Assembly: GCA_021613535.1 (NCBI GenBank)
Contig: CP075493.1
Location: 62,001-126,000, forward strand
Source of the DNA: Adineta vaga
Lineage: Eukaryota > Animalia > Rotifera
Length of the DNA stretch: 64,000 bases
Direction of reading: 5' to 3'
In this document: positions 7,795 to 60,390 of the stretch, piece after piece
Numbering within the stretch: the first letter of the stretch is position 1
How the letters are laid out: every line of letters begins with the position of its first letter
Notes under the pieces: generated by a model
Seen by the model: only the letters and a program-made list of their open reading frames with translations
The model's database searches: none
Told to the model about the DNA's origin: nothing
Translations under genes and position numbers: made by a program

Positions 7795-8737
7795 ACGGGT
7801 AGAACACTGTCGAGGCACTAGTGTTGGTGGAACTAAGGCTCTTGCACTAACATAAATCAAAAACGGGTAGAACACTGTCGAGGCACTAGTGTTGGTGGAA
7901 CTAAGGCTCTTGCACTAACATAAATCAAAAACGGGTAGAACACTGTCGAGGCACTAGTGTTGGTGGAACTAAGGCTCTTGCACTAACATAAATCAAAAAC
8001 GGGTAGAACACTGTCGAGGCACTAGTGTTGGTGGAACTAAGGCTCTTGCACTAACATAAATCAAAAACGGGTAGAACACTGTCGAGGCACTAGTGTTGGT
8101 GGAACTAAGGCTCTTGCACTAACATAAATCAAAAACGGGTAGAACACTGTCGAGGCACTAGTGTTGGTGGAACTAAGGCTCTTGCACTAACATAAATCAA
8201 AAACGGGTAGAACACTGTCGAGGCACTAGTGTTGGTGGAACTAAGGCTCTTGCACTAACATAAATCAAAAACGGGTAGAACACTGTCGAGGCACTAGTGT
8301 TGGTGGAACTAAGGCTCTTGCACTAACATAAATCAAAAAACGGGTAGAACACTGTCGAGGCACTAGTGTTGGTGGAACTAAGGCTCTTGCACTAACATAA
8401 ATCAAAAACGGGTAGAACACTGTCGAGGCACTAGTGTTGGTGGAACTAAGGCTCTTGCACTAACATAAATCAAAAACGGGTAGAACACTGTCGAGGCACT
8501 AGTGTTGGTGGAACTAAGGCTCTTGCACTAACATAAATCAAAAACGGGTAGAACACTGTCGAGGCACTAGTGTTGGTGGAACTAAGGCTCTTGCACTAAC
8601 ATAAATCAAAAACGGGTAGAACACTGTCGAGGCACTAGTGTTGGTGGAACTAAGGCTCTTGTACTAACACAAATCAAAAACGGGTAGAACACTGTCGAGG
8701 CACTAGTGTTGGTGGAACTAAGGCTCTTGCACTAACA
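7795..8737. repeat. Tandem array, 68-bp unit x ~14 (last copy partial)
   Basis: Unit ACGGGTAGAACACTGTCGAGGCACTAGTGTTGGTGGAACTAAGGCTCTTGCACTAACATAAATCAAAA. Period 68 (CGGGT at 7796, 7864, 7932...8681); one extra A near 8340 and two substitutions in copy 13. Confidence 0.97.
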
Positions 8738-17008: not shown

Positions 17009-17338
17009 GGTGTGGGTGTGGATATCTATGTGGGTGTGGATGTGGGTATGGGTGTGGATTTATATGTGGGTGTATGTGGGGTGGCATTATTTCATGTATC
17101 TTAGAACCACCCACATCATTATCCTTACCCACACCTACATTCACATAGATATTCTCACCCACATAGGACCCACACTCATGCACACCTGCCTATTATCTCT
17201 TACCTTCCTCTTGGAGATGGGAGATAGAGATGCGGGATATGGGTCATCTCCTTAGGGAGATGTAGCATCTACCTAAGGATATGCGTATCCACAAGCGTCT
17301 CCCGCCATCCCCGATCTGCGGGATATGTGACACTACTC
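17009..17338. repeat. Inverted TGTGGG-like repeat blocks plus GGGATATG-type MITE remnant
   Basis: G-rich degenerate TGTGGG tract 17009-17083 facing a C-rich CCCACA tract 17107-17185. Confidence 0.6.
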
Positions 17339-21900: not shown

Positions 21901-22543
21901 ATGAAAACACAACGAGAAATCGACGGTATATACTGTCCACCGTGGCAATCTGTGATTCGCCGATAGTAATACACCAATCAGAAGTAAGAAGAACCAATCG
22001 AGTGCCCCATCTACATGTCAATTTCACTATGTCTAAAACAAAACGTTCAGAATCTTCCTCATGTGCGCATACAACTAGAACTGCTTAGTCCAAACCAGCC
22101 AAACTCTTTTAAAAAAATGAAGGCGTCCATCTTCGACTAAAAGGAGTAAGAAAATCCAGGCGAAGGTCGACGACACATGAGTGGTCCTTCTAGCTTTAAA
22201 CTTTTATTTTTTTCCGCTTAGACCTCTTCAAAGGTTATTGAGTACATCGTGGTGACCCACGTGGAAGGTCAAAAACACATCATGGACCTTCCACCGTTGA
22301 ATTTTTATTTTTTTCCGCTTAGACCTCTTCAAAGGTTATTGAGTAAATAATAGTCAGACAGAAGTGGAAGTACGGTTCGTCAAAGACAAGTACAATTACT
22401 TGTACTTGTACTTGATGTACTTGTACTTGTCTTACCTGTGATACAAGTACATTCATGCGAGTACAAGTACAAGTACAAGTACATCGATACACGTACAAGC
22501 ACTTGTACGTGTACTTTGTGTACGTGTACTTATCCTACCTCTG
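18985..22543 (-). mobile_element. hAT DNA transposon, potentially autonomous
   Basis: Imperfect TIRs CAGAGCTGGGACGCAAGTACA / TGTACTTATCCTACCTCTG; (TACTTG)n/(CAAGTA)n subterminal repeats; encloses an intact transposase ORF; flanking 8-mers do not match. Confidence 0.9.
19836..21803 (-). CDS. hAT transposase (BED zinc finger, DDE core, C-terminal dimerisation domain), 655 aa
   Basis: CKRC...STGNFHKHLKRRH (BED); SVTIDIW, IITDNAPNM, SCFAHSLQLAI, TRWSS, ATLLDPKFK, SSAPIERAFSQSG. Confidence 0.95.
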   Translation of the reverse strand: MEFLKQFYHFDPPKEGKVMGHCKRCSRKYTDKIGSTGNFHKHLKRRHKEEYMQSRGRNPISSHDEEQENIEYESTDYDAKINESIATNLILKCNLPPSMIEQGGFRRFMNVVAHKWKPCSARYIKAQMIPSLYGSVKGKVDAMLNETDHLSVTIDIWCDRRAKAFLGITGHFIDVDFKSHAVLLKFVRLKGPHTAENIRNITKDILEELGISRKIYRIITDNAPNMIKAYKFGLAVNDESDLENQSQTSDTSENSSEYGIIDESDSEMEWTLLDPIDDKADGSNGAEETNVRLSCFAHSLQLAIRDGLNKIPYLSKTLSKCKQLSKKSHKSSKVADILEDVDKRISRSNKTRWSSEYFLIQSILRLGKKTVDDITDTIGDDTLSFNNRDFTVLEEAVDVLEPFADITTVCQSETTATVGMVVPAVVHIISHLKQMKGKVSLLKKLISQLEQSMNTRFAGIVKRLSLQPVLDSDPFNDPLYFVATLLDPKFKFRWMYLMDYTPSMESKIKHAMINLVLDECERNRAQQKGQSSSQHSFLSGDENSGQSTINVKKRKLFEYDDNEGPVSSHTGASPADKLTNYINDTSRINSLLSWKTSVPSLLADIVKKVFSVQASSAPIERAFSQSGIVMSPRRTSMGDELFQSLVFLRVNQNLL

Positions 22544-22866
22544 TACCAGATTAAAGCCCATCAAACCACTGAAAATAGATTTTTGTCGGAGCTCTAAACG
22601 TTGTCTCTCGTCTCCGTTTAGGAAAGCAATAGTAACTGTTTGTTTTTTCCATACAAAATGTGGATCAACAACCAGACCATCTAATCGAGCATCAGTTAAA
22701 ATTTCAAGCATACGAATAATTATAGTATAGAAAAGAAGGGTGGGGTGTGGGTGTGGGTGGGTGTGAGTATTCTTTTCATTCGACACCCTCGCCCTCAATA
22801 TATCATTGTTCGATTTCAAGTGGTAATTATCGAGATGAAATATTGTTTTCTTTAAGAACATTCTAG

Positions 22867-39624: not shown

Positions 39625-41015
39625 ATTATGTCGCGAGGAAATCTCATATTTAATGAAATGTGAAGGTAGTATCTTATTCTCTTTTTCAGTTAGTGACTAG
39701 ATGATAAGATGACTCTTTAGTTACTTGATTTTTAATTGGAGAATATAATATATTGATTAGAAATCATTTTTGCCAGATGGCAGAGCGTTTCGATATGATA
39801 ACTTTTAATATATTATCATGCATGATTATTTGTTATTATACTAATTTTTTTTCAAAAAAATGAACTTAATCGCAAATCAGAAGCTGTGTTTTTCTCCATT
39901 ATAGTTTGATTAAAGACGCTAGTATATTTAAGTGTAATGCATATCTGTTCTTCCAAATACTTGATTAAGAATTCAAGACGATAGAAATAAAAATATTATG
40001 TCACAAATAAAATAACGTCAATTCTTTTTTAAATTACTAGTGTATATTATGAACTTGGATATTATTTAAATGGGCGCTTTAATCCACGCATTCATCGTAT
40101 ATTCAGATAGCGTTTACTACTCATTTAACGTATTTTCGAATTAAAAGCAATTTAGAATCCTACCAGAATCGGACACTTTTCATACAATACAGAATTTTGT
40201 GGATAAGAGCTTGATTAATATATATATATTATAATATTATAATTCAAGCGGGGGTCACATCATTTTCATTGAAAACCATTGAATGATCAATAGAGAGAAT
40301 CGTTTTCAACATGAATATTTGTAAGCGAATGTTCAAATCTTTCGAGTGATCACATACAATACACGTATTCGTCATCGAAATTCGTGACTGATCTCAATAT
40401 ACCATTCAGTCACTGGATGTGGCAATATTCTAAAATATTCCTTTACTTGGAATGCAGGTTAATGAAGAAAAATCTGAATCAATGATTACAGATGTAAAAA
40501 TTCTCAGAAATCTCTATTTATAAATCCGTAACCGTAGAGGAACCGGCGGGATACGGTCCGTATCCTGTCGTCCGGAAAAGATCAACCGATCCTTCTCCAG
40601 GAACCGGTCCGGATCCGGTGATCGTATCCAAAAACTCAATCCGCGCCAGGGATTCGCCTGGAACTGTACCGGAAACGGATACCGGGATAAGAAAACTCAA
40701 TCCACATCCGGGAATCGAACGGAACTGTACGGGAAACGGATGCCCGGATACGAAGTTGGAATCCTGCTGCGGGAAATCACCAGAAATTCCTGGATCCCGC
40801 CGGTTCCGACCGTACCAAATTGACATGGGAATATAACGTAATTCTCCTTATTGTTATTCAAAGTAAAATTGTTATCTTAATCTAGCAAATATATATATCA
40901 AATAAAAGTCTACATTATGCGACGATATGAATATATCATTCTATTGTAGATTTATAATATTTCATATTTAATCAATAATTACACTGTCATTATTCAAACT
41001 ATCGTACAACTCAAT

Positions 41016-42412
41016 ATGGAGACTTCACCAAATCAAACATTAAGTAAGATTTTAATCTATATTAAGAGTAGATTTTGAACGACAGATCAATACTAGTTAA
41101 AGTTCTCTGTCCATTTAATCATAACATGGATGTCTTTTCATATTCATCGTTTAATCCATTTTTAGACGCTCCAATCAGTAACTTTGATTATTTGTCGAGG
41201 CAAATAAAACATGAATTGTCTACTCATCCCTCGTCCTCATCATCCTTACCTACTTCTGAAATGCTACATATCCATGATTGTACAACTGTAACAATCAAAG
41301 AGAAACCATGTGAACCTCTTAGTTCTGTCGAAAGCACAAATCATCTGGATCCATTGTTTCTTAAATCTGGATTTGATGGTAAATTGTTTGTTCATCGATG
41401 ATATCATCTCACCGTTCTTTCATTTATTTAGATGCAATGAACATAGCATTACAACATAAATTCAATTTAACTATTCCATCACAAGATGAAGATCCATGCA
41501 AGAAGTTTCGACTTGAAAGGAAATGTTTTGCTATCACTTGTAGATCAAATTTCACCAGTGAGATATAGTTGACACATAATTATCAAATTAAAACTACTAA
41601 AATATTATCTTTTAAATAGAAGAAGATATCTCCCATCATATTCAAAATGAATTCAATGAAAACTTACAATATATTTGTATTGCACGTTCAGATAAACCAC
41701 AATTTTATGGGTTGCCTTCTATATATTACATTCAAATAAATCTTCATAAAAAGATCAACAAGAAGAGATTGTTTTTAAAAGAAATATCAGGTTAGAATAA
41801 TTTCATTTGATTTATATGAATGTTGAAGATATTTTTGAATAGCATTCTGTTAATAAACTGTTTTTAGGAATGAATTGTAATTATCAAGTAACACGTGATG
41901 ATCGAGCTTGGAATGCATTCCTGAAAAAAGGTTTCTCTTTTGATTAAAGTTTTTCTTCATTAAATAAAAGCTTATATATATATATATATATATGTTTATT
42001 CTAGTTGGCGCATATATTGAATATGGACAATTTCGATCAGTAAGATCACGTCTCGGTATAGAATCGACTCGGGCAGGTAGAAATAAATGTAAAAAATTGA
42101 GAAAAGGAACTTTGGTACAAAATCAAAAAATTGAAATGAAAACAATGCAATTAATTGTAAAACAACTCGTCGAGATCATCACCACGAATGTAAGAACATC
42201 TATTGATAATGCAATTCAACTTGCGACTCGATTCATACCACATGAATGTGAACATGAAAAACAAATGTAAGTATCAATAATTTTATTCTTTTAGATGTTT
42301 CAAGAAATTAACTCATGCTTTTGTCTATCATTAATAGGCTTCTAGAAAAACTGAACTCTGCTTACAAATTCTTACAAATCGATCCCATGCAATAACTATT
42401 TGATTTTCAATG
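41016..42412 (+). CDS. Rep-like (CRESS/geminivirus-type HUH) protein, catalytically degenerate, no helicase domain seen
   Basis: Spliced: KFRLERKCFAIT|..LQYICIA...SIYYIQINL..|CNYQVTRDDRAWNAFLKK|..YIEYGQFRS. Motif I is present; motif II HxH reads IYY and motif III YxxK reads FLKK. Confidence 0.7.
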
Positions 42413-42648
42413 AAACGGCCAGCAACGTGCATTTCGGGAACCATTTATCTGATATGCTTAAATGTACTCTGTTTGTCTCTTTCAAAATAATTCTGATTTT
42501 CTGAACATAATCTTGTATAGTCAATTGTTCTATAATAGAATTTGAAAAAAATGTAGATCTTGTATATATATATATATATCAACACTTTAATGAACATAAA
42601 TAATATGATTCTATTAAAATATTCTAGATTAAATTACAACACACACTA

Positions 42649-43020
42649 ATGGCATCTGATTTGTGGCGCTTAGTTCAGATTATGATAGATTCAGCCATCG
42701 AAGAATTTGTATTAACACCTGATGATAAAAGATCATCAACAACTGAAGATTCCAACGAACAAACAAGCAAATATGATCAACCATCAAATACTGATCGGCA
42801 ATTTTGTTTCATCATCTTCAACAATCCAAAATGGTCTCATATACTTCGACGACACAGAGAAAAGGTGCATGAAAACGAAATAAAGGCACTCAACTCCATG
42901 ATGTATATATTTTTTCTAGATTGCACAACAACGAGCACAAACTGTTACATCTGATCCATCAACTGCAAAGAGAAATGAAGAAAAAAAGGAGCTGTCTTTG
43001 GATGATCGTTTTACTGCGCA
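42649..43020 (+). CDS. Small co-oriented ORF of unknown function in the Terminon-like array
   Basis: 101-aa ORF with a probable short intron; no recognised motif. Confidence 0.3.
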
Positions 43021-43433
43021 ATTACGACAACTATTCGATGATTATATGCAGCATACAAAACGACGATATCCTATTAAATATTTTATTGATTTTACTGAAT
43101 GAAAGAAGTGAATTTTGTTCTAAATTGTCTTGAAAAGAGATATTGATATACATATATATCAAAATAAAAACTAATTGAAAACTCTATGTCGAAATCCATA
43201 TTCGGACATCATACATGTATAACTAAAGAAACATCTTTAAAATATTTCTGTTTCGTTTTGGATTAAAATAAAAATAAAATAAACAATACTGATTGAAGCA
43301 CCATTCATTCATCGTAATTTAATTTTAACAATGAGCGAATATTCATTCTATAAGATATATGTATATAGCACTATTGTACTGATTTAATAAGCTACTAACT
43401 TATTGTATTCGTTTTCTTTTTCAGTGGCGTGAT

Positions 43434-46400
43434 ATGCAATGGTGTGATAACATTTTTGATGTCATCGATGACAATGAAGATATATTGGAATATACACCAG
43501 AAGAATTAAATCGATACTATATGTCGGGTCAACTTCGGTCAAACTTTGAAGAAGATAATGACAATAACAATGAAGAAATCACGTCAGATATCGATACGGT
43601 ACTGTTCGCTGATCACACCGATGATAATCAAGTAAACAAAGTTTCAGTTATAAATTGTAGATAACTTATGGGTTTCTTAATGTTTAGTCAGCCACAATAA
43701 CAAATGCAGACAAGAAAATAGAAAACAAGGCGACACACAAGGAAGAAGACATTCTATCAGAAAAACTAAGTCAATTATCCACAGATAATAATTACGAGCA
43801 ACCTATTGCCAAATCTAATCGAAAAAGACGACGAAGTACATATAGAAGTCTGAATTTAGTTTCAAAAAAGATTAAATTTACTCAAAATAATGATACAAAG
43901 GATAAGAGTACAAATGATAATGTTAAAGAAGAGAAATCTGATGATGTACCAGCATATTTATCACTAACAAATATATCGTTTCTTCATGTCATTCAACAGA
44001 TTCAAAATACAGAAAATTCAATTGATATGAAAGATTTGCAAATAATAGCATTGTTAATGCATCGTATAACTGCTAATCGTATACAAAAACAGATTAACAG
44101 TGTCTATCTACGATCCGGTACTGGTAAATTAGATGATTCTAGTTTCGATTTAATCGAAATCGATCGACGAGTTTGGCCTAAAGAAGTTAAATCAGATATG
44201 CTAGCGAAAATTGCACAATCGAACATTACTACGGCAACAAAAATCAATTCAGATAGTGAACAACTCGATTTTGAAAATCTTGTCAATGAACGTCTACAAC
44301 AAATCAATGAAAAAATTGAACAATATACTCAACAACTCATTGACAAAAAGAATCATTTAATCGGATTTACATCATCAATAGAAAAGACAATCATTCAGTA
44401 TGTTCAACGCTATGGCATTATTCCACTTCAAATGAAAAGAGATCTAAAAATAGCTTTACTCAAACATGATTACAATACCATCATACTTCGAAGAAAATAT
44501 GAACAAGAAAATCCAAACGAATATCATGTAAGTCAAGTAGAGCTAGTCGAAGAATTTCATAGAACTAATATCAATATTCTTTTATCATTCAGACTGAAAT
44601 AGCCGAACAGCTATGTACTACAAAATATGAGTTGGAGAAATCGAAACGTGAATTAATTGAATTAAAACAAAGAGTTTTCTATCATAAACTCCCTGCTTTT
44701 GTCAAAGATATCGAACTATCACCACCATCGTCTACTATGTCTGCAACCACAACAGCATCCAACACTGTTCATAGTCAGTTATTCAACAAAAGAAACTTGA
44801 TCTTCTTGCTGCACATATAGCCAAAGCAGAAATCAAATACTATCAAGCAGACAGTAACTTCAATTCTGAATATACGAAAATGCTGAATAATCATCGAAAT
44901 CTTGTACGAAACAAAGGAATGACTTCAGCATTAAGCGATTTATTGGAAAAGCGACTCACCAATATCACTGATCGATTACGAGATATACATTACTATCGAA
45001 TCAATTTCTTTCTTCGAAGTTCTTATAGTGATTTGGAAAACATATACAAACAAATTGAGCCTCAAGAAAATACGAATATTAACGTGTTCTTTTCAAATGT
45101 AATTAGTTATACATTACACGGATTGAATCAAAAACAAATACAGTTACTTAGTCGAGGACCGACTTATGTTCCACCTTGTCAATCACGACTCAAATTTTCG
45201 TCGAAATCAACAGAGACAACCATAACAGATATTGTGAAAAAGCAATATGCACCATTGAAACATCAAATGGCTAGTCTCTTTTCAAAGCATCGTGTTAATA
45301 TTGCTTTATCATGGGATGTTCATTCAATTATTTGTCAAAAGTTTACTAATCTTTTTGCTATTTCAATTCCTCATAACATTCAACAACGTGCTACTGAAGA
45401 AATGAAATTAATTCAATCGATACGATCTTCTCTAAAAACAAACAATATGATAATACGACGAACAGCTGACAATCGAAATAGATTCTATGTAGGGAACAAG
45501 ATTGATTTCGAAGCAAAAGCAAACGAATTCATGTCGAAATCTAGTGATAAATATGAATTCACAGTGACCATTGGTAATGATCAAGGTAATAATGACGATC
45601 AAGAAAAACAGCCACAAAATCCACAATATTTTTTGAAGGGAAGAATTGAAGCAATCAATTTTGCATTAGAAACGTTGGGAAAACGCAAAGCATTAGATAA
45701 TGATACGATCAACAAGTTAATAATTGATCCAGAGAAAGTTAAATTACCTTATCTCTATTTCTTGCCAGATATTTCGAAAGTGAGTATCATCTCCAGTCAT
45801 CGTTTTTTTGCTTCTCACCTAACCTATCTCAAGATAATATTCATTTTTTTAATAGGAAAACGAATTGACACTTGTACCAACGATCGTAGCACATCAAAGT
45901 ATGACATCAAATATTGGTGAATACGTTGATAAACTGATTCGACCATTTGCTGAAGAAAAGATGAAACATTTGACATTTTTTAATGAAGCTGATTTCATGA
46001 AAAAATTAATGTATTATGCTTATGATCAACGTCGTTTAAAATCAACAAGTCTCTTTTGCACAATTCAAATTACCAATTTTTATTCATTGGATAAGCATGA
46101 TACAATGATTGATACAATTATAGCTTTCTTAAAAGATAAATCAGCAAATAACACAGTCAATAAAGTATCGATCAATACAATAAAAAATCTACTACAATTA
46201 TTTTTCTATCAAAATCTCTTTACATATGAAAATAAAATTTATATGATAAAAAATGGTAGTCCAAACACGCTATCATTAACTGAAACACTAGCTAATATAT
46301 ATTTATTTGAATGGCAAAAATCCATATTGAATCAATTCGAGTACGACCAAGAATTATTTGGACGGTTAGTACAATTCTTTTTTTTCTCTATCAATATAAT

Positions 46401-47135
46401 TCGCAATGATACTCGCTATCTTTTAGACATAAAGATCACATCTTTTTCACTTGGAATAAGTCTTATGACATGCTTTATTCTTATCTACAGTCCCTAAGAA
46501 AGCAACAACCTAGTGTTAATTTTAAAATATCGATTGGATCAAATGTACATTACTTCAATGCTCATATTGAAAATAGAAAAGGTGAACTATACAGTCGAGT
46601 GTATCATGATCCAATGATACCACGTTATACACTGCCTTATGTTGTTGGTCATTCAAAAGTACGACTTAGTGACTGGCTTCGATCAGCACTTCTTCGAGCT
46701 GTCTGTTATTGTTCATCTGTTGAAGATTTTCATCAAGAACGTCTCTATCTTGAACTCACTTACCTTGTCAATGGTTATTCATTTTTCTTTGTGGAAAGTC
46801 ACATACAAAATTTCTTCGATTATTTTCAAAGAGAATCAATACGATACTGTTTAGAACAATCAAATTATCATTCATTTCGTCGACAATGGTTTGATTTTTT
46901 TGAGTTGCAAAATCAACGTTCGGAAAAACTTCAACAATTGGATGATAAGAAGCAAGTGATTCGTTTCAACTATTTCTATGATTATGGCCCAAGATGTGAA
47001 TTTAATCAATATTTTCATGAATTATGGTCGGATTATTTTAAATCGAATCCAACATTATCCAATGAAAAGTTAAAAATCCTGCTGACAACCAAGCACACCC
47101 AGTCACTCAACGCATTATTATCTTTTCAAACATGA
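43434..47135 (+). CDS. Coiled-coil domain fused to Athena(PLE)-type reverse transcriptase, catalytically dead; one frameshift at ~44790
   Basis: GT-AG introns 43632-43687, 44528-44592, 45780-45855, 46365-46426 restore the frame. PLE motifs LLSRGPTYVPPCQ, RRTAD, LPYLYFLP, YTLPYVVGHS. Motif A reads FCTIQITNFY; motif C reads R|HKDHIFFTWN. No GIY-YIG domain follows. Confidence 0.85.
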
Positions 47136-47491
47136 GATTTTGTATACTATAGATTGTATTTATCTTTGACGACCAATTCAAATGTTTTCTTGGAGGCTAT
47201 GCACTTTGTAACATGATTAGAATTGATATTAATAAAATATGAATAAAATAGATCATGTGGTATACGCTGATCTTTTTCGTTTGAATTTTCTTTCAATCAC
47301 TTGTTTTCTATCATTTCTCTAATACTTTATGTTCGATTTCTTGTTTCAGACACATTTCTAGCGAATCTGGTCTGCGATCTATTAAGCTTCGAAAGCCTAT
47401 CAGTCTGCATTTCAATTCAAACAAAACTAAACATCCAAACAATCGAGTACTTCATCATTGAAACCATTTCAAATCTGTCGATAAAAACACA

Positions 47492-48296
47492 ATGTTACAA
47501 TCGAATTCAAATCTATCCAGTAATGAACGAAAACGACTCTTAAATATACAATTAAGTATTTTACCAGCATTCACTCCACTCAATGGCTGGCGAGTGTATT
47601 GTATTAATCAAACAACTGATCCATCATTATTGCACTATCTTATTGAATTAGCACGAAAAACTGTCAAATATACGATCGATACGGAACATGATTATTATAC
47701 ACATGAAGCAGCATTGATTCAAATTGAATTTATACGTCGACAATCAGTTATCCTTTTGATTGAAACATGCCATTTACCACAAGCATCAACTGTCACATTT
47801 TGGTTAATCAAGTCACTTTTTAAAATAATTTTTAATCCATCTAATGCCATTTACTCGTGGGGTGATGCTGTAAATGAATTAAGTCGATTTACACATTACA
47901 ATCTATTTTCCTGTTCAAGTCTTTATCAAATGAATAACATCGATATACAAAGTGGCTTCAAAATATGGTAAACTTTCATTCATGATTGTGGTCTCCATTT
48001 ATACGGAGATGATAATGAACTATGTACATGTCCACACCGACCAATAAAACATAAAAACAATCAATGGTCACTTCAGAAAGCAGTTGCTTATGCATTTCAT
48101 GAATTTCTAGATAAGAGTCGCTGTAAAAGTAAATGGCGCCAACGACTGACAAGCACGAATCAAATACGACAGAAAATTTGTAATGAATTAATTCGATATG
48201 CAGCTAATGATTGTTTAGCTGTCACCAAACTACAAATGCTAGTCGGTTTCAATTACACCAAAGAACAACTTGACATGTATAATCGAAACAAATGAT
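47492..48296 (+). pseudogene. DEDDy-type 3'-5' exonuclease with one in-frame stop (47969-47971)
   Basis: ExoI YTIDTE, ALIQIEF, YSWG...EL, IDIQ, then same frame CTCPHRP..WSLQKAVAYAFHEFLDKS...LIRYAANDCLAVTKL (ExoIII YxxxD). Confidence 0.85.
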
Positions 48297-48639
48297 TTAA
48301 ATAGTAAGCCATGTACATATAATAATATACGCATAGCTATCGAATTCTTTCTAGAAATAGCAACCATATGGAACATTGAAGAAATTTCGAACATATATGT
48401 TTTATCATTGTATTTGTGTTTTGTTGATGTTTTTGAAAAAGAAAAAATAGATGACTATAATATGTATTCGTCGTTGCGTTTTTTTATATTCATTTCTTTT
48501 ATTTTTAGATAGCATCCTGAGTATATCTATTTCTACGTTTCAGAAAAAAATGTCTAGTACAAGAGCAACGTACCAAGACGGAAGTAATTACAATTATGAC
48601 ATCTTTTATTTTGAATTGAAATAGCTCGAATTTTCTTTT

Positions 48640-49741
48640 TCTTTTCAGGTGATGACAAGCAACAACAACAGATCGAGCGGGTAAATATAGAAAACAAAGT
48701 TAATGTATGTCCAAAATGACTATTGTTTCTTACCAGCAATCGGATCCATTGTCAATCACCGACACTACGAAAACATTCATCGAAAACGATCAGCAAAAAT
48801 TCGTCAATAATCAACAAGTTGAAGGAATAAGCACAGATGTAAATTTAATTGATTTTTTGCGATGTTATATCCCACTTGAACGTTGTAAGGTAAAATATGT
48901 AATATTTTCGATTAGGAAGTAGATGAACTGATATCCATATTCTCTTCTCATTTGCATCATTACTTATAGGTGGAAAACTATGTGATTAATCATAGTGACA
49001 CTCAAAGTACAACTTTTCGAAAAGATGCACCACTAACCCAAGAAGAAGAAGATGGAAAAGAAACAACAAAAGAATTAAAACAAATAAGTCAATCAAATCA
49101 ATTCGCTACATCACGAACGGAATCAAATGAAGATAAATGATGTGGAACATTATTCGACTTCGTAGACTTTAATCCGTTGGAAAACTACATCTATATAGAT
49201 TTCTTTGAATAAACTTTTATATTAAACAAGAAGACGAAAGAGATATTACTTATCAAATAAACTAGTTTTCTTTCATTTTAGATCTGAACTCATATTGGTT
49301 TCATTTCCTGTAATCATCTTATTTCAACCGCTTTCGTTTTTAAATGGCTTCCAGCAGTAGCTCAACGTCAGTCTCAGACAAAATGAATTCAATCCGTAAG
49401 AAACTGTTACAAATTGCCATTGTGAAACTGACCTATATTTTGATTTATAACTAGATACGAACAAGCCATCAAAAATGATGGACATAGAGGATATTGTGAC
49501 ATCTCCAGTACAAACTGAACAATGTCCTAGTTTAGCATCATCAATAATACGGACTCCAAGTGCACCATTACCACGAGCTTCAGCATCAGTTGCACAAGAT
49601 CCCAGTCAAACACCGCGACGTCAAGTGGTCACATTTCAGTTACCAGGAGAAGTAGATCCAACGATTCAATTACCCAATATGTCATTACTATGGAGATCTA
49701 TCAAGAATATGTCTCTTGAAAAGAAACCTGGCCAAAAATGA
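48640..49741 (+). CDS. Two short spliced co-oriented ORFs, unknown function
   Basis: ORFs 48707-48922 and 49475-49741 with flanking GT/AG signals; low-complexity products. Confidence 0.3.
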
Positions 49742-50636
49742 CTCAGATGATTTCCATGTCAATTTAATTGTTTTTGAAACCTTTACTAGTAACTAGTGTA
49801 TCTTTTATTGGTTCATGTCTTTTTTCGTCAAAATCTCATTGTATTTCGAACTTTATCTAAATCTGTTCTTCGTCTACTACATATTATAAACATTCGAAAT
49901 ATCATCATTTTTCTTCTAACATATTTCACCTTTCTTTAACCATATGTTTATCGATTCTAGATATAAATATATCTTTATCAGCAATTGCCAAACAGCTCAA
50001 TCGTACAATTTATCAGTCATAAATGCATTTACTTGAACAAGTAAGTAGCTTGAACATATGTAGGACAAGTAGAATGAGATATCGTTATATTTGAAATTCT
50101 CATAAACGTAGATGGTGATCCATTTGACAAAAAATCTATGACATAGATTTCAATAATCTCAATAACAATACCATATCAAATACCTAGGTGAGTACTGGTC
50201 GGTTAGAATATCATAGAAGAATTTCCCAGATATATTTTATATATATTTATTTACATTAGATAAAATCATCGATCTACCTTGAACATTCAAAAGTTATTTG
50301 GATGATGACAGACAATTACCATGAAGCCATACGACTGAAGGGAAAATAAAACATCCAGCTTCATTTTATCTACTCCATTGGTGTAATCGTAACTGCTGTT
50401 TTGTGAAATGTAACCTAGTATGAATTCAAAATGTCTGTCGCAATCCATAGCACATTTATTTTTTTTTGAAAAGCTGGCAGTTTTCTTTCGACTTCTATAC
50501 AAAATTATCAAAAATCATCTGAACGATTTGATCTGTGTGAAAGACACGAACTAATGTCGTAGCTCTATCTTTTTATACACATTCGTTTAAAGTTCTTTTC
50601 GATCGAATTTATCTTGATTTGCTTTTCTTTTTTCAG

Positions 50637-52102
50637 ATTGAAAAGAATATTTTTAAATCGGACGATTTATTACCTTTGCATCACACACAAATGACAAAAG
50701 ATGGGTACCAATCGAACCGATTAACACAACACAATTCAGGAAGAAAATCTCATGGTAACCGGAGAATACAAAGATTCAGAAGAAAATGTCGTTCAAAAGG
50801 AATGACTAAAGAAGCAATCGAAAAATTAGTGGAAATTCAAAAGACAACTTATTCAATTCATCAAAACAATCGAAATCTAGAGAGAAAATATATGAATAGT
50901 TATTCCACAAGTTGTACTGATGATGATCTCAACATCGTATCGTCAATGTTGTTTGAAAACCATCAGGTATGACGATAATAGGTAACGAAATAAAGTTATA
51001 TAGTATTATTTTACATATAGACCTATCTTCATGAATATCAATCTAATAAAGAAAACATACCAACCGGATCAGCTGGTGGATCATTATCGATATTGACCCC
51101 AATAATATCAACAGGAACTTGGAGTTCACCACCATCTTCTAAAACATATCATAAGGCAGTTCACCGATATTCTTTATCTACAGATCATTGGAAACAAACA
51201 TCAATGCTAATACCTAACTATTATCAACTCTCTTTCTTTGAATTCAAAGATTTACTACTTAACATAATTCAAGCAAGCAATCGGCAGCAGATTCAAGAAC
51301 GAATAACAAATTTTACCGCACTACAAATCATACAACAGCGTGCTCAACTAATGTGCAAGGTTTCCCAATTAAGAATTGAAAATGATTATTGGAATTATAT
51401 CAGCAATATGGCGGACATACCCATTGTAATTTGGCTATCAGAAGTTTCTAAAGACGTCACTAGACAAAATTTCATTAATTGGGATCATACTAAAACAAAA
51501 AACAATATTCAACAACGTCAACAAATGATTCAAGATAAATTGCAACAAGCTGAATATAATTTGAATAATCATTTACACCAACAGCTAGATCCGTTATCTT
51601 TTCAAGCGAAAACAATAGCGCTTCCAGATCATCCAATGACTATTATTTCCGATGCTCTGGCTCATCTGGTAGAAAATGGTCTACATTATTTTCGTATGAA
51701 CTTTGAACAAAAGAAAATCTTATTAATGTTTGATACTAATGATGCACAACTTGTCAAATCATTCTATGATTTAAATCCAACATCGCAACAGGTTTCTATT
51801 CATTTATTACATAGTTTTTATTTTATTTTATTCTTGTTTTTCATTATATCTTAGATTTCGACTGCCCAAAAACTTTGGCGAACTAAAATAAAACAATGTC
51901 AAAAAACCGTTTGTCATCAAAAGAAAAACTATCCATTGCCAATGTTATATGATAGTACAATCAATACAGAGAGCCAAAAGCAGCAAAATGAAGTACCTAA
52001 AATGGGATCATTTACTCCGACCATGTCTACTATTGTGGAAGCTCGTCTATGCAATATGGAAGAGCGCATTCATCAAATGATACATTTTTCTTCTACTTTT
52101 TA
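50637..52102 (+). CDS. Terminon-type coiled-coil ORF with basic N-terminal motif (partly degraded)
   Basis: GRKSHGNRRIQRFRRKCRSKGM; PNY; Q-rich heptads; FEQKKILLMFD..D..LVKSFYDLNPT..Q|I..AQKLW. Ends at an intron position similar to the CC part at 44027-44527. Confidence 0.7.
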
Positions 52103-52959
52103 ACATAAACCTTTCTTCTCGTAATATGCATCTACACCGAATATTGTGTCCTCTATATAGATGGGGGAAAACTGTCAATGAAAGTTTGAATGTATAGAAG
52201 TTTTCATTTCTTTCCCTTATTTGAATTGGTGTACAACTTCAACATGTAAACTAAACTTCTCTCTCTGTTCTAGATATAATTAACATTTAACATTTTGTAT
52301 ATTCTGGAATCAATTATCGAAATCTACACCAAGGAACGCTTTTTACGTACCACTAGTATTGAAAAAAGTGTGAAAACGAAAAGAAAACTTTCTATTATCC
52401 ATCTCCATTTCAAATTATATCATCAAGGAATCAACCATTTTAATACATATCTCATAGTTTCAAACATCTCAAAAGTAAGTGTAAGCAGGAAAAGTAAACT
52501 ACATACATAATCATATACTCATACCTAAATATTTTCAAGACATCTTATCTTATTACGCACTCCCTTGACTAACAATAAGATTTTCCCAACATGCTCAGCT
52601 CCAACTTACATCTACTACACTGAATATGAGACTATAAAATTTATTTTATCATATACCAAACATAGAGGTAAGTATAGCTTCGGTTTTATATGCAACGAAC
52701 GTTACACTACTTCTTCTCTTATGAGCTTTCAGTCACATTTCAGCCTTAAAATATTAAAAATTCTCTTTTGAGTTTAGACACAAATTTTCAGCGATCTGAA
52801 CAGCTGGATCTTCAACTAAGGTGAGGCATATAGTTATAACATTTTCAATCCATACAAACCCCTGTAAATGTAAAAATTGTTTTTGTTTCGATTTAATTTA
52901 TTTTGATATTTCTTTCAGATAGCATTTCTCAGCAAGTTCACAGATACCATTTTGAAGAA

Positions 52960-55900
52960 CTTGGGGCTAAGCTGGATGCTACCAAGCGGGTCCACAGGTT
53001 GCGGATAGTAGAACGGCCATTAGTATGATGGTTAGCTGCGAATAAGATCAAGCGATTGATCAAATAAACAGTCCCGGACAATACTCAGCCTTCTTGCCAG
53101 CAGGGTGTGGTGGGGTTTTGTTTGGAACCAAAACTCTTATAAAATGCCACAGAAACCCAAAGACGACAGGATGACAGGGCGAGTATAGGCCGCCAGAAAC
53201 AAGGTTCCTCCCGAACCGAGATTTCATAAGCCTTATCCTGGGCCGATGGAGCTCGCTAGCCAGGACTAGCAAATTCATCAAATGGAGAAAACCATTCCAA
53301 ACCGGCGGAAGGCAAGGGGAAACCACCGCTGTACACTCCCAAGCACAACATGATAAACGTCAATACTTCCAGTCAAGATAACAGCGTGAAGGGGGTTCTC
53401 AGAGAGAACAACTCGCTCGGTAGAGGTGGTCATGTACGACAGGTGACCCTCGATCGTCAACAGGCTACTGTCCCAATCAAGATCTCACTCAAAATAGGAA
53501 CATGGAATGTAAGAACTATGTTTCAGAAAGGAAAATTAGACAATATAAAGAACGAAATGGAACGGATGAAAATAAATGCGTTAGGCTTATCTGAAGTCAG
53601 ATGGCTGGGTGCTGGATCTTTTACAACTGATAACTTTCTTTTATTATACTCTGGAGGAGACAAACACGAGAAAGGAGTAGGAATGCTTCTTGACAAAGAA
53701 ACCTCCAAGAGTTTGCAAGGCTTTTGGGCGATTTCAGACAGAGTTCTTCTTGTAAAACTCCACAGCAAACCCTTTAACACTTCATTAATTCAATGTTACG
53801 CACCAACAGCCGATTATGATGATGACGCAATCACGAGCTTCTATGAAGATCTAGACAAAGCCTACAAACAATGTAAGTCTGATGATATCATTTACGTAAT
53901 GGGTGACTTCAATGCAAAAGTGAGAGATAAAAGAATTGGCAATACAGTAGGACCTTTCGGTTTAGGAAACAAAAATGACAGAGGAGATAACTTAATAACT
54001 TGGTGCCAATCACATAATCTCGTAATCACAAACACGTGGTTCAAAAATCACCCACGTAGACTATGGACATGGCGAAGCCCAGGAGATCGGGCAAGAAATC
54101 AAATAGATTACATTATGGTCCCTCATCGATTCAGGAATTCAATCATTTTCTCTAAAGCATTTCCTGGAGCGGACTGTGGTAGCGACCATGTCCCAGTTAT
54201 TAGCAAAATTCGAGTAAAACTAAAAAGAATAAATCATCCACAGAAAAATATAAAGCTTCAAGTTCACATTCTGAAAACTGATGCAGATCTGAAAGAAAAA
54301 TTCCGCATAAAAGTGCAGAATCGTTTTGAAGCACTAGATCAAATAACAGAAACCGAGGTATTGTGGGAACAGATAAAATCATCCATACTAACATCTGCTG
54401 AAGAAATAATTCCAAAAACTCAATTAAAGAAAAAGAAAAGATGGATGACTAATGAAATCTTACAACTAATGGAGCAAAGACGACTGAAGAAGTCAAACCC
54501 CCACGAATACCAATTGATAGACAAATCAATCAAAAAGAAATGTTCAGAGGCAAAAGAGAAATGGTTGAACGAACAATGTTCAGAGATCGAAAGTAAGTTG
54601 AGTGTAAACACCAAATTCGCTCATCAAAAGATCAACGAAATAACAGGAAAATCAAGATGCACCAGTTCAGGTTGTATCAAATCGAAAAATGGAACCGTTC
54701 TAATGGAAAAAGGTGACATACTGAACAGGTGGTCAGAATATATAGAGGAACTCTTCGATGATAATAGAGCTTCTAAGCCTAACATAAAGAAAAATATAGA
54801 AGGGCCTCCAATAATGAAAGATGAAGTAAGACTGGCCATAAAATCAATGAAAACAAACAAAGCAACAGGGCCAGATGGAATATCCATCGAAATGATTCAA
54901 TGTCTCGATGAATTAGGTGTAGATGTCATGACAAAACTAATAAACAAAATATATGATACGGGTGAAATTCCGGAAGATCTAACAAAATCAGTATTCATAG
55001 CACTTCCAAAAAAGCCTGGAGCTACTGAATGTGAATTACATCGCACAATCAGCCTCATGAGTCATATCGCAAAAGTTTTGCTTAAGATTCTGATAATGCG
55101 TATGAAAAATAAAATCACGCCAGAAATCGCAAAAGAACAATATGGCTTTATGCCTGACAAAGGCACCAGAAACGCAATCTTCATCCTTCGAATGATAATC
55201 GAAAGATCAATTGAAGTCAAACATGACTTATACCTATGTTTCCTTGACTACACAAAAGCTTTTGATAAAGTCAAACACGACAGTCTATTCCAAATTTTGG
55301 AGAAACTCGATATTGATGGCAAAGATCTACGATTAATTCGAAATCTTTATTGGGATCAAAAAGCCGCCATGAGAGTAAACAATGATATAAGTGAATACAC
55401 AAACATCAAGAGAGGTGTCAGACAAGGATGTGTTCTATCTTCAGATCTCTTCAACATCTACAGTGAAATGATACTCAGAAACCTAGAAGATGTTGAAGGC
55501 GTAAAAATTGGAGGATACAACTGTAACAACCTAAGATATGCAGAGACACTGTATTGAAGCACCGAAGCAGAGTTGCAGAAGATGATTAATATAGTCTCGA
55601 CAGAGAGTACAAAAATGGGCCTATCACTTAATGTCAAGAAATCAGAATGCATGAGTATTTCAAAGAATAAAATTTCACCGACATGCAATGTAAATATATA
55701 TGGTGCACAAATCAAACAAGTCACTCACTTCAACTACTTGGGATCAATCATAACCTCAGATGGCCGATGTGATGAAGATATCAAAAAGAGAATCGCTCTC
55801 TCCAAACAAGCTTTCCAAAAGATGAGTCCGATTTTGAAAAACAGATCCATATCGATCAATACTAAAACAAGAGTTCTCAAATGTTATGTATGGTCGATTC

Positions 55901-56326
55901 TTTTGTATGGATCTGAATGCTGGACAATCAATAAAGAGATGGAAAAACGCTTAGAGGCTACTGAGATGTGGTTTCTCAGAAGGATGCTCAATGTACCTTG
56001 GACTGCTAGAGAAACCAATGCGTCAATATTAAAAAGAACGAAATCGAAAAGATTTTTAATCAATACCATCCGTTATAGGCAACTGAAATTCCTTGGCCAC
56101 ATAATCCGTAAAGGTTGCATGGAACATCTGGTATTGAGTGGAAAAATCAATGGAAAGAAAGATAAAGGCCGACCAAGAATCAAATATCTTGAAAACATGA
56201 ACCTTTGGATTGAAAAACAGGGTTACACGAAAATAGGCTTTCTTCACGCAGCTCAAGATCGGAAAAATTCGCGTATCATGTTAGCCAACGTCTGTAACAG
56301 ATAAGGCACCTATCTGATCTGATCTG
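52960..56326 (+). mobile_element. Near full-length RTE-clade non-LTR retrotransposon, 11-bp TSD
   Basis: TSD ATTTTGAAGAA at 52949-52959 and 56327-56337; 3' tail (ATCTG)3; RTE-type 5' UTR (GGTTGCGGATAG...TAGCTGCGAATA). Confidence 0.95.
53350..56304 (+). pseudogene. RTE APE-RT polyprotein broken at the YADD motif
   Basis: IGTWNVRT, YAPT, MGDFNAKV, QIDYI, GSDH (APE); KATGPDGI, FLDYTKAFD, GVRQGCVLS, NNLRYA-(lesion, TGA)-...YLGS. ORFs 53350-55557 and 55573-56304 are in the same frame. Confidence 0.93.
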
Positions 56327-56439
56327 ATTTTGAAGAAAGTTAATTAAAAATGAATTCTATTTCACCAATCAATCGATTTATTCAAATGAATTCATGTCAT
56401 TTCTACAGAAAAAAGAATACTCAAGATTGTTGGCTTGGA

Positions 56440-56754
56440 CCCAGGTCGAAAAATCCGAGCCGGATCCGGCCGGAACCAGAACATTTCGGTCATTTCATGG
56501 AAGCAGGATTCCGACCCGGATATTTTCGAACTTTTCCACTCGCTTCTGACTAACTTCCAGTAAGTTCCAGTCGGAAAACGACTGGAATTCGCCAGAACAG
56601 TCCGAGAAATTCCGATCGGAATACTGCTTCCACTCTCCTTTGTTTTCCGGTTGGAACCGTTTGGAACTAGCTAGAACCGTCCGGAATATCCTCGGAAAGG
56701 CGTGATTTCTGGCAGGTTCCTTTCGGATCCGGAGGCCGGAACGTCCGTCCTGGG
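56440..56754. mobile_element. CMC-like MITE, CCCAGG termini, 2-bp TSD (GA)
   Basis: GA|CCCAGGTCGAA...GTCCGTCCTGGG|GA; CCGGA-rich interior. Confidence 0.88.
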
Positions 56755-57946
56755 GATACAAATATATTTCATGTGATCGTTTACAAGAATATCTACTTAA
56801 AATGATTAAACCATGTACCAATGTGGTTAGTGATAACATAGTAGTAACAACAATGACGGTACCTCAATTACCTAGTACGTATTGGTTTGATAATCTTATT
56901 TTGAGTATGGCAAACAATTCAGACCTCGATGTCTAGATTACAAAAAGAAATTTCATTCTGTCTCTTTTTCTACCTTTTTATTTGCCAAATAGATCAATTA
57001 CAAGCTACAATTTCATTCGATTTCCATTCGCCATACATCATTGTTATTTTAATTCTATCTATGATTCTATTCATAAGTCTACTTGTATTTTTGACAACTA
57101 TTATCATTATTTATACTATGAATTATTGTCGAAAAAACCGACGACGTCAAGTATGTATGCCGGAGACAAATCAATACATCCGTGAGTACTTTTATGTCCC
57201 TTATTCACTCATTTCTTTTCGTGAATCGTTTTTCGATATAACGGTGATTCCTACTCTTAGGAACAGAAGGAAGAGAAAAACAAAACTATTTAAATCCATT
57301 ACCAATAATCAATAACAAAAAAGAAACAGAGATCGGAAAAAATAATCAAGGTCTTCCGATAAATCATAATACGCAACGACAATCAACAACTTATGATCAT
57401 AATCTACAGTCCGTAAGTTCTATGACCAAAATCTACTTTACCTTTAATTCAATTTCATTCATTTTTCTTGCTCCTCATATTTCAGTCGCCACTTTACTAT
57501 GAATGCCTATAAATTAGAAACTTCAACCAACCTCGATTCCAGTGCAAGCGGAACAAGCATTGGACGCCAACAAATAGACGAATATATTCCTTTCGATTAC
57601 CGCCCAAGGCATTACTTCTTTTTTTGCATATATCTTTCAGTTTTGTACTTCTTTATTGTCAATTTCATCTACTTAATTATTGCAATTCTCGCGTATTGCT
57701 TCCAATTGAACATTCTCATCTCTATACTTTGACATTTTACTTCAGCGGATCAATTTCTGTAAAATATTTCGTAGCTAATATAAACTGATGCTATCTTTTC
57801 CACTAAAAACTAATATCACAAATCTACCCTATCCGTAGACCAAGAACTAACAACGCACAGAAATACATTAATATAAATAGATACATTTCTGAATTCGAGA
57901 TGAAGCCAGAGTAGAACCAGCATTAGAATTGATTGTAGACTAATTA

Positions 57947-57996
57947 TGCCACCTGAAGATAGACCCTTTAGCAAGGTCGAAACTATAGTCGTGGTA
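57947..57996 (+). ncRNA. Minimal type I hammerhead ribozyme (Penelope-like element type)
   Basis: Stem I TGCCAC/GTGGTA; core CTGAAGA (57953-59); stem II GACC..GGTC; GAAA (57979-82); palindromic stem III CTATAG; GTC cleavage triplet (cut after 57990). Two extra nt (TA) before stem II. Confidence 0.8.
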
Positions 57997-58014
57997 GCTA
58001 TATCTTTATATATA

Positions 58015-58038
58015 CACACCCACACCCACCCACCCACC
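58015..58038 (-). repeat. Short interstitial telomeric-type repeat (TGTGGG/TGGG on minus strand)
   Basis: CACACCCACACCCACCCACCCACC at the junction between the hammerhead and the Gypsy pol. Confidence 0.65.
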
Positions 58039-58384
58039 GCTCCTGTTGTTACTCGTTCCAAAACTCGTGCACATCCTCCTACCACCACCTCTGATCCGAT
58101 TCCACCATCTGTTGGTGCTTTTGCTCCAGCAGACCCTTCGCATTCTTTCTCCTCTAGCCCACCCATCCTCTCCCCTGACACGTCGTTAGATCTCAGTTTT
58201 TCTCGTATTCAACACGAACAATACTCTGATTCCAGTAGTCTTTCCCTCATTAATCAGTTGCGTCAACAACCTTCTCACTCACAATACGTCTTACACGACG
58301 ATACACTCTTCCGCCTCGTTTCTCGTTTTCCCTCTGATCTTCCCTCCTCGCATTCCTTACCTTCCTAAATCTCTCATTCCCTTA

Positions 58385-59426
58385 GTGCTTCGTCTTTATC
58401 ATGATCATCCGCTTAGTGGTCATTTTGGTGTACATCGCACCTTTTTGCGCATTCGCGATAAATTCTGGTGGCCCAACATGCACTCTAGCATTCAAAACTA
58501 CATTGCCTACTGCTCTTCTTGTGCTCGTCATAATATCCTCCGCACTAAGACTCCCGGCCATCTTCATTCGATTGATCCACCATTTGGCGTGTTTCAACTG
58601 TTGCACCTCGATTTCTGGGGTCCTGTTCTAACCCCTTCTGCTTCTGGTAATCGTTACGTCATTGTTCTTACTGATAACTTGTCAAAATACGTCATTGCAC
58701 AGGCACTTCCAGATTGTACTGCTCGCTCCGCTGCTCAGTTCCTCATCGATCGTTTTATTCTCGTGCATGGTGCTCCTGAACGTCTCTTAACTGATAACGG
58801 TACACACTTTAACAATACTCTTCTGCGCGCCGTTACTTCTTCCATGCAGATCCCTCACACCTTTTCTGTCGCCTACCATCCACAAACCAATGGACAAGTT
58901 GAGCGGTTTAACGCTACGTTTGCCGCTCAGCTTGCCAAATACCGTCATCCCGATCGTCATGATTGGGATCTCTACCTTCCCTCTATTGTCTATGCTTACA
59001 ATACTTGTGTTCATTCTACCACTCAGCTCATGCCTTACGAAGTCCCTTTTGACCGCCGTCCAAAAAGTCCTTTTGATGCAGCTTCTCCCACTATTAATCT
59101 CCCTCCTCTCCATTCCTTTTACCCGTATCTACAACAAACTCGTCGTCTTCTTCTTTCTGCAGCTCGCAAAAATATCATTCGTCATCAGTTACACTGGCAA
59201 CAGCGCTATAATCGTAACCGTCGTAATCCCTCTTATCATGTCGGTGATCTTGTTTATGTTCATGTTGCTGGTGGTCGTACTAAATTTACTTCTCGCCGCT
59301 CTGGTACCTATCCAATTCTCGATATTTCCGGCACGCAAAATTATCTTGTACAGGATCCTTCCTCTGGTTCCACTGGTGGTGTCATGTTAGTCAACTCCAT
59401 CCCTTTGTAGACCGTCTTTCTCCGTA
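58385..59426 (+). CDS. Gypsy integrase (H2C2 zinc-binding, DDE core, GPY/F-like end), frameshifted at both ends
   Basis: YHDHPLSGHFG..CSSC; LHLDFWGP; LLTDNGTHF; YHPQTNGQVERFN; alternative-frame C-terminus WCHVSQLHPF. Confidence 0.92.
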
Positions 59427-59717
59427 ATTCTTTTCTACCCCTCTTTCTCTATTCTTTCCATCATGTCCGTCATTTACTCACATTTCGATCGACAGGTTGT
59501 GGCAGCCTGGATCTTCTGAATTTGTTTTTCTTTTATCTACTCCCTTGTCGCTATCTTTTATATTACTTTTTTCACATGGCTCCATTCTTTCGCATGTGAT
59601 TTTTTTTGTCTCGTGTTTCTCCATTTCCTGGATCTGTACTCATCCCCTATATATACGGATACATTCTTCTGATCATTCGCTCATTCATTCATTCATTCAT
59701 TTATCTCTCCTTTTATT

Positions 59718-60035
59718 ATGGTCTTCAACGTTATCTACCTTCTGGTGTTTTTATGCATTTTCTCCACAGTTGCTCTTGCTAGTATTATCGATTCTAAGCC
59801 GCTGTCTCCCTCTGCAAACGTTCATGTTGATATTGTCAATTCCATGGCCGCTTCCTTACAAACTCACGCCCGGCAATTTCATTCATCCTGGCGTGATTAT
59901 TGTGTCATTTACCTTATGGTCGTAGTCAATGGTCTTCTGGTTCTTACCTGCTGCGGTCTTTTCCTCTTTTGTTCTTATCGTCGCCTGCTTCTTCAACTGC
60001 AAAAATCTCCACCTCCAAGTATTATTCGTACATAA
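59718..60035 (+). CDS. Small signal-peptide + TM ORF at the env position
   Basis: 105 aa with a hydrophobic N-terminus and a second TM followed by YRR; lies between integrase and PPT. Confidence 0.5.
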   Translation: MVFNVIYLLVFLCIFSTVALASIIDSKPLSPSANVHVDIVNSMAASLQTHARQFHSSWRDYCVIYLMVVVNGLLVLTCCGLFLFCSYRRLLLQLQKSPPPSIIRT

Positions 60036-60199
60036 TATTCTTCAATTACACCGAACATTTGTTTTTTTTCGCTTTGCTTCATTATCTTGCCCTGCTTGAT
60101 TCTCATGTGCAGCACTTATTTTTTTTCTTTTTTCGTTCTGTTTTTCTCACTCTCTTTTGCTTCCTTTGGTATGCATTCCACTTGCTTGATGGGGGGAGG

Positions 60200-60390
60200 T
60201 GTCATGGACTTCGTCCATGATTCTTCCACTCCTCAACACACTTCATTCCCCTTCATTCCATTCTTCTCCTCTTTACTCCTCTTCCATTCTCTTTCATCCC
60301 ACATCTACTCTTTTCGTATATATACATGCGCATTCTTCATAAGAGTGTGTGTTCTTCTCCTGTCTCTTCCATCAATAAAGGACTATCACA
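60200..60390 (+). repeat. 3' LTR (191 bp)
   Basis: TG...CA ends directly after the PPT; TATA-like TATATATA and AATAAA inside. Confidence 0.8.

Follow-up and report, generated by a model that had tools for sequence, protein, structure and literature searches.

The junction at positions 58014/58015 of the window (the whole 64,000-nucleotide stretch of Adineta vaga DNA analysed here, C1:62001-126000, from an assembly of 6 contigs and 100.8 Mb) is best explained as the usual 3' terminus of a Terminon, comprising a hammerhead motif, a short spacer and a few reverse telomeric repeats, abutting a Ty3/Gypsy-type LTR retrotransposon that has lost its front part. Healing of a chromosome end with telomeric units, followed by the addition of Terminon cDNA, is the best explanation of this arrangement and probably the correct one. 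Capping of this kind is already described in A. vaga, and the mechanism is not new. A sequence-only reading of the same DNA had proposed such a history, with a break in the Gypsy that gained telomeric repeats and was then covered by Terminon cDNA growing leftward, and this stands as the preferred account, reconstructed from the anatomy of the site.

The reverse-complement telomeric tract (58015-58038, plus strand) reads CACACCCACACCCACCCACCCACC, with 2 canonical CACACC units in the 12 nt beside the spacer and three CACC units in the irregular 12 nt beside the Gypsy (CACCCACCCACC). As at a healed break, the telomeric repeats adjoin truncated non-telomeric DNA and their G-strand heads toward the chromosome end. 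Telomere-like 12-mers with at most one mismatch occur 9 times across the window, against 0.05 expected, and no telomeric units were found right of 58038 in the window. Two further telomere-like tracts (17011-17140 and 22741-22767) have their G-rich strand on the plus strand, a polarity opposite to that of the junction; within 17011-17140 a C-rich run stands opposite a degenerate G-rich one, and neither tract has a hammerhead beside it. The junction corresponds to C1:~120,015. The earlier reading had correctly recognised that DNA now lies distal to it, and its figure of at least 40 kb is replaced by ~120 kb, the distance to the left end of C1 given by the position of the window.

The hammerhead motif, the 18-nt spacer and the telomeric tract all lie where they had been placed from the sequence. 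The motif (57947-57996, plus strand) is a minimal type-I hammerhead-like sequence whose GUC site ends at 57990, kept in 5 other copies, and reads UGCCAC CUGAAGA UA GACC CUUUAGCAA GGUC GAAAC UAUA GUC GUGGUA. Helix I is formed by UGCCAC/GUGGUA and helix II, after a 2-nt bulge, by GACC/GGUC, around the core CUGAAGA...GAAA; helix III has a stem of 2 bp closed by a palindromic loop, which is ACUAUAGU in the window copy, ACUAUAUAGU in the copy at C3:19857945 and ACCGGU or ACGCGU in other families. By reading of the sequence, the type-I core CUGANGA...GAAA...UH with its three helices is present. Rfam (RF00163) returned no match to the window copy, either for the whole window at the gathering score or for 57600-58200 at E≤10, and the C6 copy, which has the canonical CUGAUGA, gave a full-length sub-threshold match to Hammerhead_1 (20.3 bits, E=0.36, where the cut-off is 34). 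For 57940-58005, the minimum-free-energy fold was not better than those of shuffles (z = -0.77). All 12 proposed pairs form in each of four distinct aligned copies, a statistically weak result (32 of 500 shuffles did equally well), and two helix-I pairs are changed on both sides in the divergent C3:19857945 copy (G-U to C-G and C-G to U-A).

The motif resembles the minimal PLE hammerheads (Cervera & de la Pena 2014, PMC4209133) in its type-I topology and 6-bp helix I, in a helix II of 4 bp that has bulged bases on the 5' flank, and in a helix III of 1-2 bp with a small palindromic loop, suggesting dimer action. It differs from them in N7, which in the window copy is A, the others having U, U, U and G; in the 2-nt bulge before helix II; and in its occurrence as a single 3'-terminal motif, not paired in pLTRs. 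The spacer (57997-58014, plus strand) is A/T-rich and reads GCTATATCTTTATATATA; it is conserved in other copies as GCTATTTCTTTATATA, with CACACC units always directly 3', and across all the hammerhead loci takes the form GCTAT(T/A)TCTTTATATA, followed by (CACACC)n. Cleavage at the GUC would remove both spacer and telomeric tail. Because all DNA copies keep spacer and repeats, their templates would have been uncleaved, and the motif here probably serves as a fold and not as a cutter, a role that agrees with PMC6431247.

A genome search located the same hammerhead at six loci (the window and 5 others), each leading through the spacer into (CACACC)n and then into different DNA. The number of telomeric units varies from 2-3 to about 25: the first C6 copy has 3 units followed by a 5'-truncated related 3' end, the second C6 copy about 25 and the C3 copy 9, each followed by unrelated DNA, the C2 copy about 5, and the divergent C3:19857945 copy 2-3, with another degenerate hammerhead end with repeats ~290 bp further on. 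The start of the tract is identical in every copy (CACACCCACA). The expectation that other copies of the hammerhead segment would end in such repeats joined to unrelated DNA was borne out, and target-site duplications were found at none of them. On C1, C6 and C2 the copies are 75-120 kb away from the chromosome end, and one on C3 is 627 kb away. Genome-wide, the pattern of a GAAAC-palindrome-GUC followed after 10-40 nt by telomeric units has 48 matches, against 9 for the reversed pattern; the 48 represent about 25-30 distinct loci in several families, and this combination is the published Terminon terminus.

The left partner of the junction (40830-58014, plus strand) is a Terminon/Athena-type retroelement, ~13.5 kb net of two later insertions, with its 3' end centromere-ward. 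The segment 57816-58014 is best read as the 3' terminus of this telomere-attaching, presumably Penelope-like element. The element is assigned by its terminus, size and location, which match the descriptions in PMC6431247 and PMC8557442: the body is large and multi-ORF, the location subtelomeric, and at the 3' end a hammerhead motif directly precedes reverse-complement telomeric repeats of variable unit number, without a target-site duplication. A long C6 copy and homologues confined to bdelloids further bear out the earlier identification. The window element is 92.7% identical over 12.2 kb to C6:61434-73614, with a 5' start common to both, and its 3' 1.3 kb is common to the C6, C3 and C2 copies. 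ORF 44880-45920 has homologues in bdelloid rotifers only (Adineta, Rotaria), some of which carry PF28514 or PF26215; the nearest protein-atlas clusters of ORF 45865-46497 are RVT_1/HTH_animal/DUF8422, a lead and not proof. Pfam found no RT in the element's ORFs, for which sequence searches against Pfam and PDB yielded no usable match. PLE RTs have YxDD. At motif C the RT-like ORF instead has FRHKDHIFF in the window (46428-46454) and FRQQDQIFF in the C6 copy (C6:67027-67147), so that neither long copy has a canonical RT active site, which suggests mobilisation in trans or decay; the element's own RT may therefore not have made the cDNA. In ORF 47492-47971, which has no Pfam match, YTIDTEHD...AALIQIEF is similar to the ExoI motif of DEDDy exonucleases; DEDDy exonucleases are known Terminon cargo (PMC5408684, PMC6431247).

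Shorter copies at C2:16197444 and C3:19721339 have the last ~2.6 kb of the element. Both begin at one internal point (AACGGAGGAAAATCTT, window-equivalent 51705), with different upstream flanks and no telomeric units at their 5' ends, and may represent a ~2.6-kb non-autonomous derivative with the Terminon's 3' end. At its 5' end (40830) the window element directly abuts a second repeat family at that family's own terminus (window 40355-40833), and copies of this family at C1:397720, C6:3219237, C3:1382788 and C3:2170734 all stop at 40829-40833. This join lacks telomeric units, and the step that next extended the chromosome outward thus departed from the textbook order of 'cap, then next Athena'.

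Two elements entered the Terminon later. A LINE with APE endonuclease and RT (52960-56326, plus strand; Pfam Exo_endo_phos and RVT_1; ORF 53350-56304) is flanked by an 11-bp target-site duplication, ATTTTGAAGAA, at 52949-52959 and 56327-56337, has a (CTGAT)-like 3' tail and is 99% identical to C5:16314654-16318025; it is a young secondary insertion. Its APE and RT ORF was considered as part of the Terminon body and ruled out by the 11-bp duplication and by the empty site in the C6 copy. The second is a TIR element of ~315 bp (~56440-56755, no strand assigned) with ends CCCAGG...CCTGG, a multi-copy sequence with more than 40 genome matches of up to 98% identity; the C6 copy again shows an empty site, marking the element as a secondary insertion into the Terminon. 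Elsewhere in the window, a 183-bp inverted repeat of 96% identity (19445-19627 and 22163-22345) flanks a minus-strand 655-aa ORF (19836-21803), together probably a DNA transposon, and a tandem array at 7795-8737 has a 68-bp period with units about 99% identical.

The right partner (58039-60232, plus strand) retains the end of the RNaseH-IN linker, the integrase and downstream sequence of the 5'-truncated Gypsy, collinear with its relatives to at least 60232, and reads GCTCCTGTTGTTACTCG... from 58039 onwards. Integrase_H2C2 and rve domains (Pfam) lie in ORF 58385-59410, and this Ty3/Gypsy integrase is collinear with the relatives' full pol; the relatives have a GPC motif in the integrase tail, as reported for TelKA and Vesta6c (PMC5408684). 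Homology to related pol genes (L037-L040, by tblastn/tblastx) begins at 58039/58040, at the PVVTRSK codons of the linker, and the open pol ORFs (RT-RNaseH-IN) of L037 and L039 align to the window only from 58039 on. At the alignment anchor, PVVTRSK(A/T)RA, the relatives' DNA reads gattgttatcTCTCCTGT(C/A)GT and the window cccacccaccGCTCCTGTTGT, placing the breakpoint at 58038-58040. LTRs, gag, PR, RT and RNaseH of the Gypsy are absent left of 58039 and elsewhere in the window, where no 3' LTR was identified either, in agreement with the abrupt start of pol in the RNaseH-integrase linker that had been noticed at the outset. As no Gypsy RT or RNaseH is found in the 58 kb upstream, the arrangement is not a simple insertion into an intact Gypsy.

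The assembly contains no close full-length copy of this Gypsy. Its relatives at C4:15.06 Mb, C1:17.88 Mb and C5:1.30 Mb have 67% identity over 1 kb; the closest, on C6, is 78% identical over a 414-bp integrase fragment, and those that span the breakpoint reach at most 67%. The RNaseH-IN linker is poorly conserved, at about 32% amino-acid identity. At the position of the window's tract, L037 and L039 read 'gattgttatctctcct' and the more distant, independent L040 reads '...ITHSCSAITRS...', with no His/Thr/Pro run corresponding to the C-rich tract upstream of the (V/I)TRS anchor in any of them. Two independent relatives thus lack the tract at the homologous place, against the possibility that intact Gypsies contain all of it. 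The earlier caveat that some of the C-rich sequence may be the Gypsy's own is weakened by these relatives and kept for CACCCACCCACC, which is not assignable with certainty because a close full-length copy is lacking from the assembly.

Logan contigs from four short-read runs of four studies (2013, 2015, 2021 and 2022) were aligned to 56760-59760. From run X2, a 990-nt contig on 57983-58973 bridges the junction, and contigs from X1, X4 and X5 on 58044-58973 (X5 to 58946) carry 44-46 further letters on the junction side, the repeat 57999-58043 being skipped in the alignment. Short-read contigs of all four studies thus run from Gypsy through the tract into the spacer, and the junction is therefore real and no misassembly. 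The contigs of all four runs lack a C that the assembly has at 58346 (plus strand), which makes the apparent frameshift separating ORFs 57946-58368 and 58385-59410 an error of the assembly. In the reads' version the pol remnant is a single open frame from the junction to 59410, and a remnant so intact is probably not very old. The same version holds a frame of about 488 codons that runs from an ATG in the hammerhead through spacer and telomeric tract into the integrase (57946-59410); RNA support for it was not found in four presumed-RNA runs, which hold only 5% of the sampled words.

We propose that a chromosome end came to lie within the RNaseH-integrase linker of the Gypsy, by breakage or erosion, and that a few TGTGGG-like units were then added to its G-rich strand. 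The (CACACC)n tail of a Terminon transcript would have annealed to this G-overhang, allowing the chromosomal 3'-OH to prime reverse transcription and the Terminon to be laid down outward, that is leftward. Further distal DNA would have accumulated thereafter, and the LINE and the small TIR element would have inserted in the Terminon afterward. The site would accordingly once have been a physical chromosome end, and the units nearest the Gypsy would have been supplied by telomerase and not by the element. Break-induced replication from another end, one published possibility (PMC2861651), may have brought in the distal 120 kb through which the junction became internal.

Healing is supported by where the junction lies, 120 kb inside the left end of C1 and with the 3' end of the element directed inward, and by published accounts of the same architecture and mechanism (PMC6431247, PMC8557442, PMC5537684) and of Athena fragments together with telomeric repeats at fresh A. 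vaga breakpoints (PMC13564844). Against it, the junction is internal today, and the sequence gives no proof of a former terminal position. The uncapped 5' end of the Terminon and the want of a canonical YxDD in both long copies also tell against it. The polarity had been described as that expected of a healed end, and in a left arm the inward 3' end does match, but this match lends weak support, since either orientation is found among the telomeric tracts and Terminon 3' ends of the arms. On the left arm of C1, long telomeric tracts located at 154 kb, 511 kb and 1.12 Mb run opposite to the junction, and of 12 Terminon ends close to chromosome ends only about 8-9 point the expected way, in a survey whose reversed-pattern control is uninformative, that pattern being itself a telomeric permutation.

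Telomeric units need not have come from telomerase if the G-rich complement of the Gypsy's own CACCCACCCACC paired directly with the (CACACC)n of the Terminon RNA, the tract then being partly or wholly Gypsy- or element-derived. The division of the tract into a canonical half beside the spacer and an irregular half of CACC units beside the Gypsy would suit such priming, as would the C-rich coding strand of the Gypsy, with CCACC runs nearby (e.g. 58070-58084), and the identical start of the tract in all copies, expected if the first units come from the element RNA. With the linker poorly conserved and the relatives distant, CACCCACCCACC could be Gypsy sequence, which would favour direct microhomology priming. 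However, such a run is missing upstream of the (V/I)TRS anchor in the two independent relatives, and variant units of the CACC type are also present within long, undoubtedly telomeric tracts (those of the second C6 copy and the C2 copy), and we consider this origin unlikely. In its stronger form, in which the G-rich complement of the CACC-rich Gypsy linker mimicked a telomere to which the (CACACC)n tail could pair and the Terminon was attached without telomerase at all, it is a little more doubtful still. If this were true, Terminons could directly cap raw internal breaks, and would do so here through a family mobilised in trans, without a canonical RT site.

About as unlikely as direct priming is that an interstitial Terminon 3' end with a short tract was ligated to a broken Gypsy during double-strand break repair, for instance after desiccation, or was brought there by ectopic recombination. 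Such joining would accommodate the heavy rearrangement of the subtelomeric arms, in which telomeric tracts and Terminon ends face either way up to megabases inward, and the absence of telomeric units from the 5' ends of the Terminon and of its C2 and C3 copies; it nevertheless requires a chance break within the 24-nt tract, and leaves unexplained the different-length tract and unrelated DNA at every copy, both of which terminal attachment explains. Bdelloid LTR elements are concentrated in subtelomeres, where they adjoin Athena elements (PMC2861651, PMC5408684), and the Gypsy might accordingly have integrated in telomeric repeats downstream of the Terminon, a later deletion taking its 5' half and part of the tract. 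The absence of telomeric units right of 58038 in the window, and the need for two events where one is enough, make this improbable. A chimeric join in the assembly between a repeated Terminon end and an unrelated Gypsy contig would find some encouragement in the multi-copy hammerhead region, where short-read contigs break (word depth is 3-4 times higher on the Terminon side than on the Gypsy side, which fits about 4 copies), and in the presence of at least one single-base assembly error nearby, at 58346; with independent contigs from four studies crossing from Gypsy to spacer, it is hardly credible.

Chromosome-end healing followed by Terminon attachment also has close counterparts. The Athena/Terminon 3' termini of Gladyshev & Arkhipova (2007) and Arkhipova et al. 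(2017), in the parts of their content relayed by PMC6431247, PMC8557442 and PMC5537684, share with the window a hammerhead motif directly before short (ACACCC)n, chromosome-end attachment and a subtelomeric location, as well as host or TE sequence beyond the repeats and a large multi-ORF element, whose RT-like ORF in the window has look-alike clusters with RT and PLE-associated domains as its nearest. Compared with the elements so described, the window family has FRHKDHIFF (FRQQDQIFF on C6) in place of YxDD, its 5' end is without a telomeric cap and its partner is a Gypsy cut in the RNaseH-IN linker, the likeness being to published descriptions. The neotelomeres of A. vaga mutation-accumulation lines (PMC13564844) have (TGTGGG)n and Athena directly at the breakpoint in the same species; those are fresh, seen in reads of experimental lines at deletion breakpoints, whereas the window junction is fixed in the reference, present in runs of 2013-2022 and ~120 kb inward. 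In Drosophila, HeT-A/TART healing (PMC5537684) similarly caps a terminal deficiency with end-primed retroelement cDNA whose 3' end faces the centromere, although these elements are non-LTR, with a poly(A) tail, no telomerase repeats and no ribozyme.

Existing knowledge of Terminons or of telomere healing is unchanged by the junction. It provides a well-resolved, read-supported case of bdelloid end rebuilding, in which a break would have been followed by a few telomeric units and then by Terminon cDNA, with the breakpoint mapped within 1-2 nt in a recognisable gene and an order of events given by the later insertions. As a marker, the locus could help to compare strains and haplotypes and to date the growth of subtelomeres.
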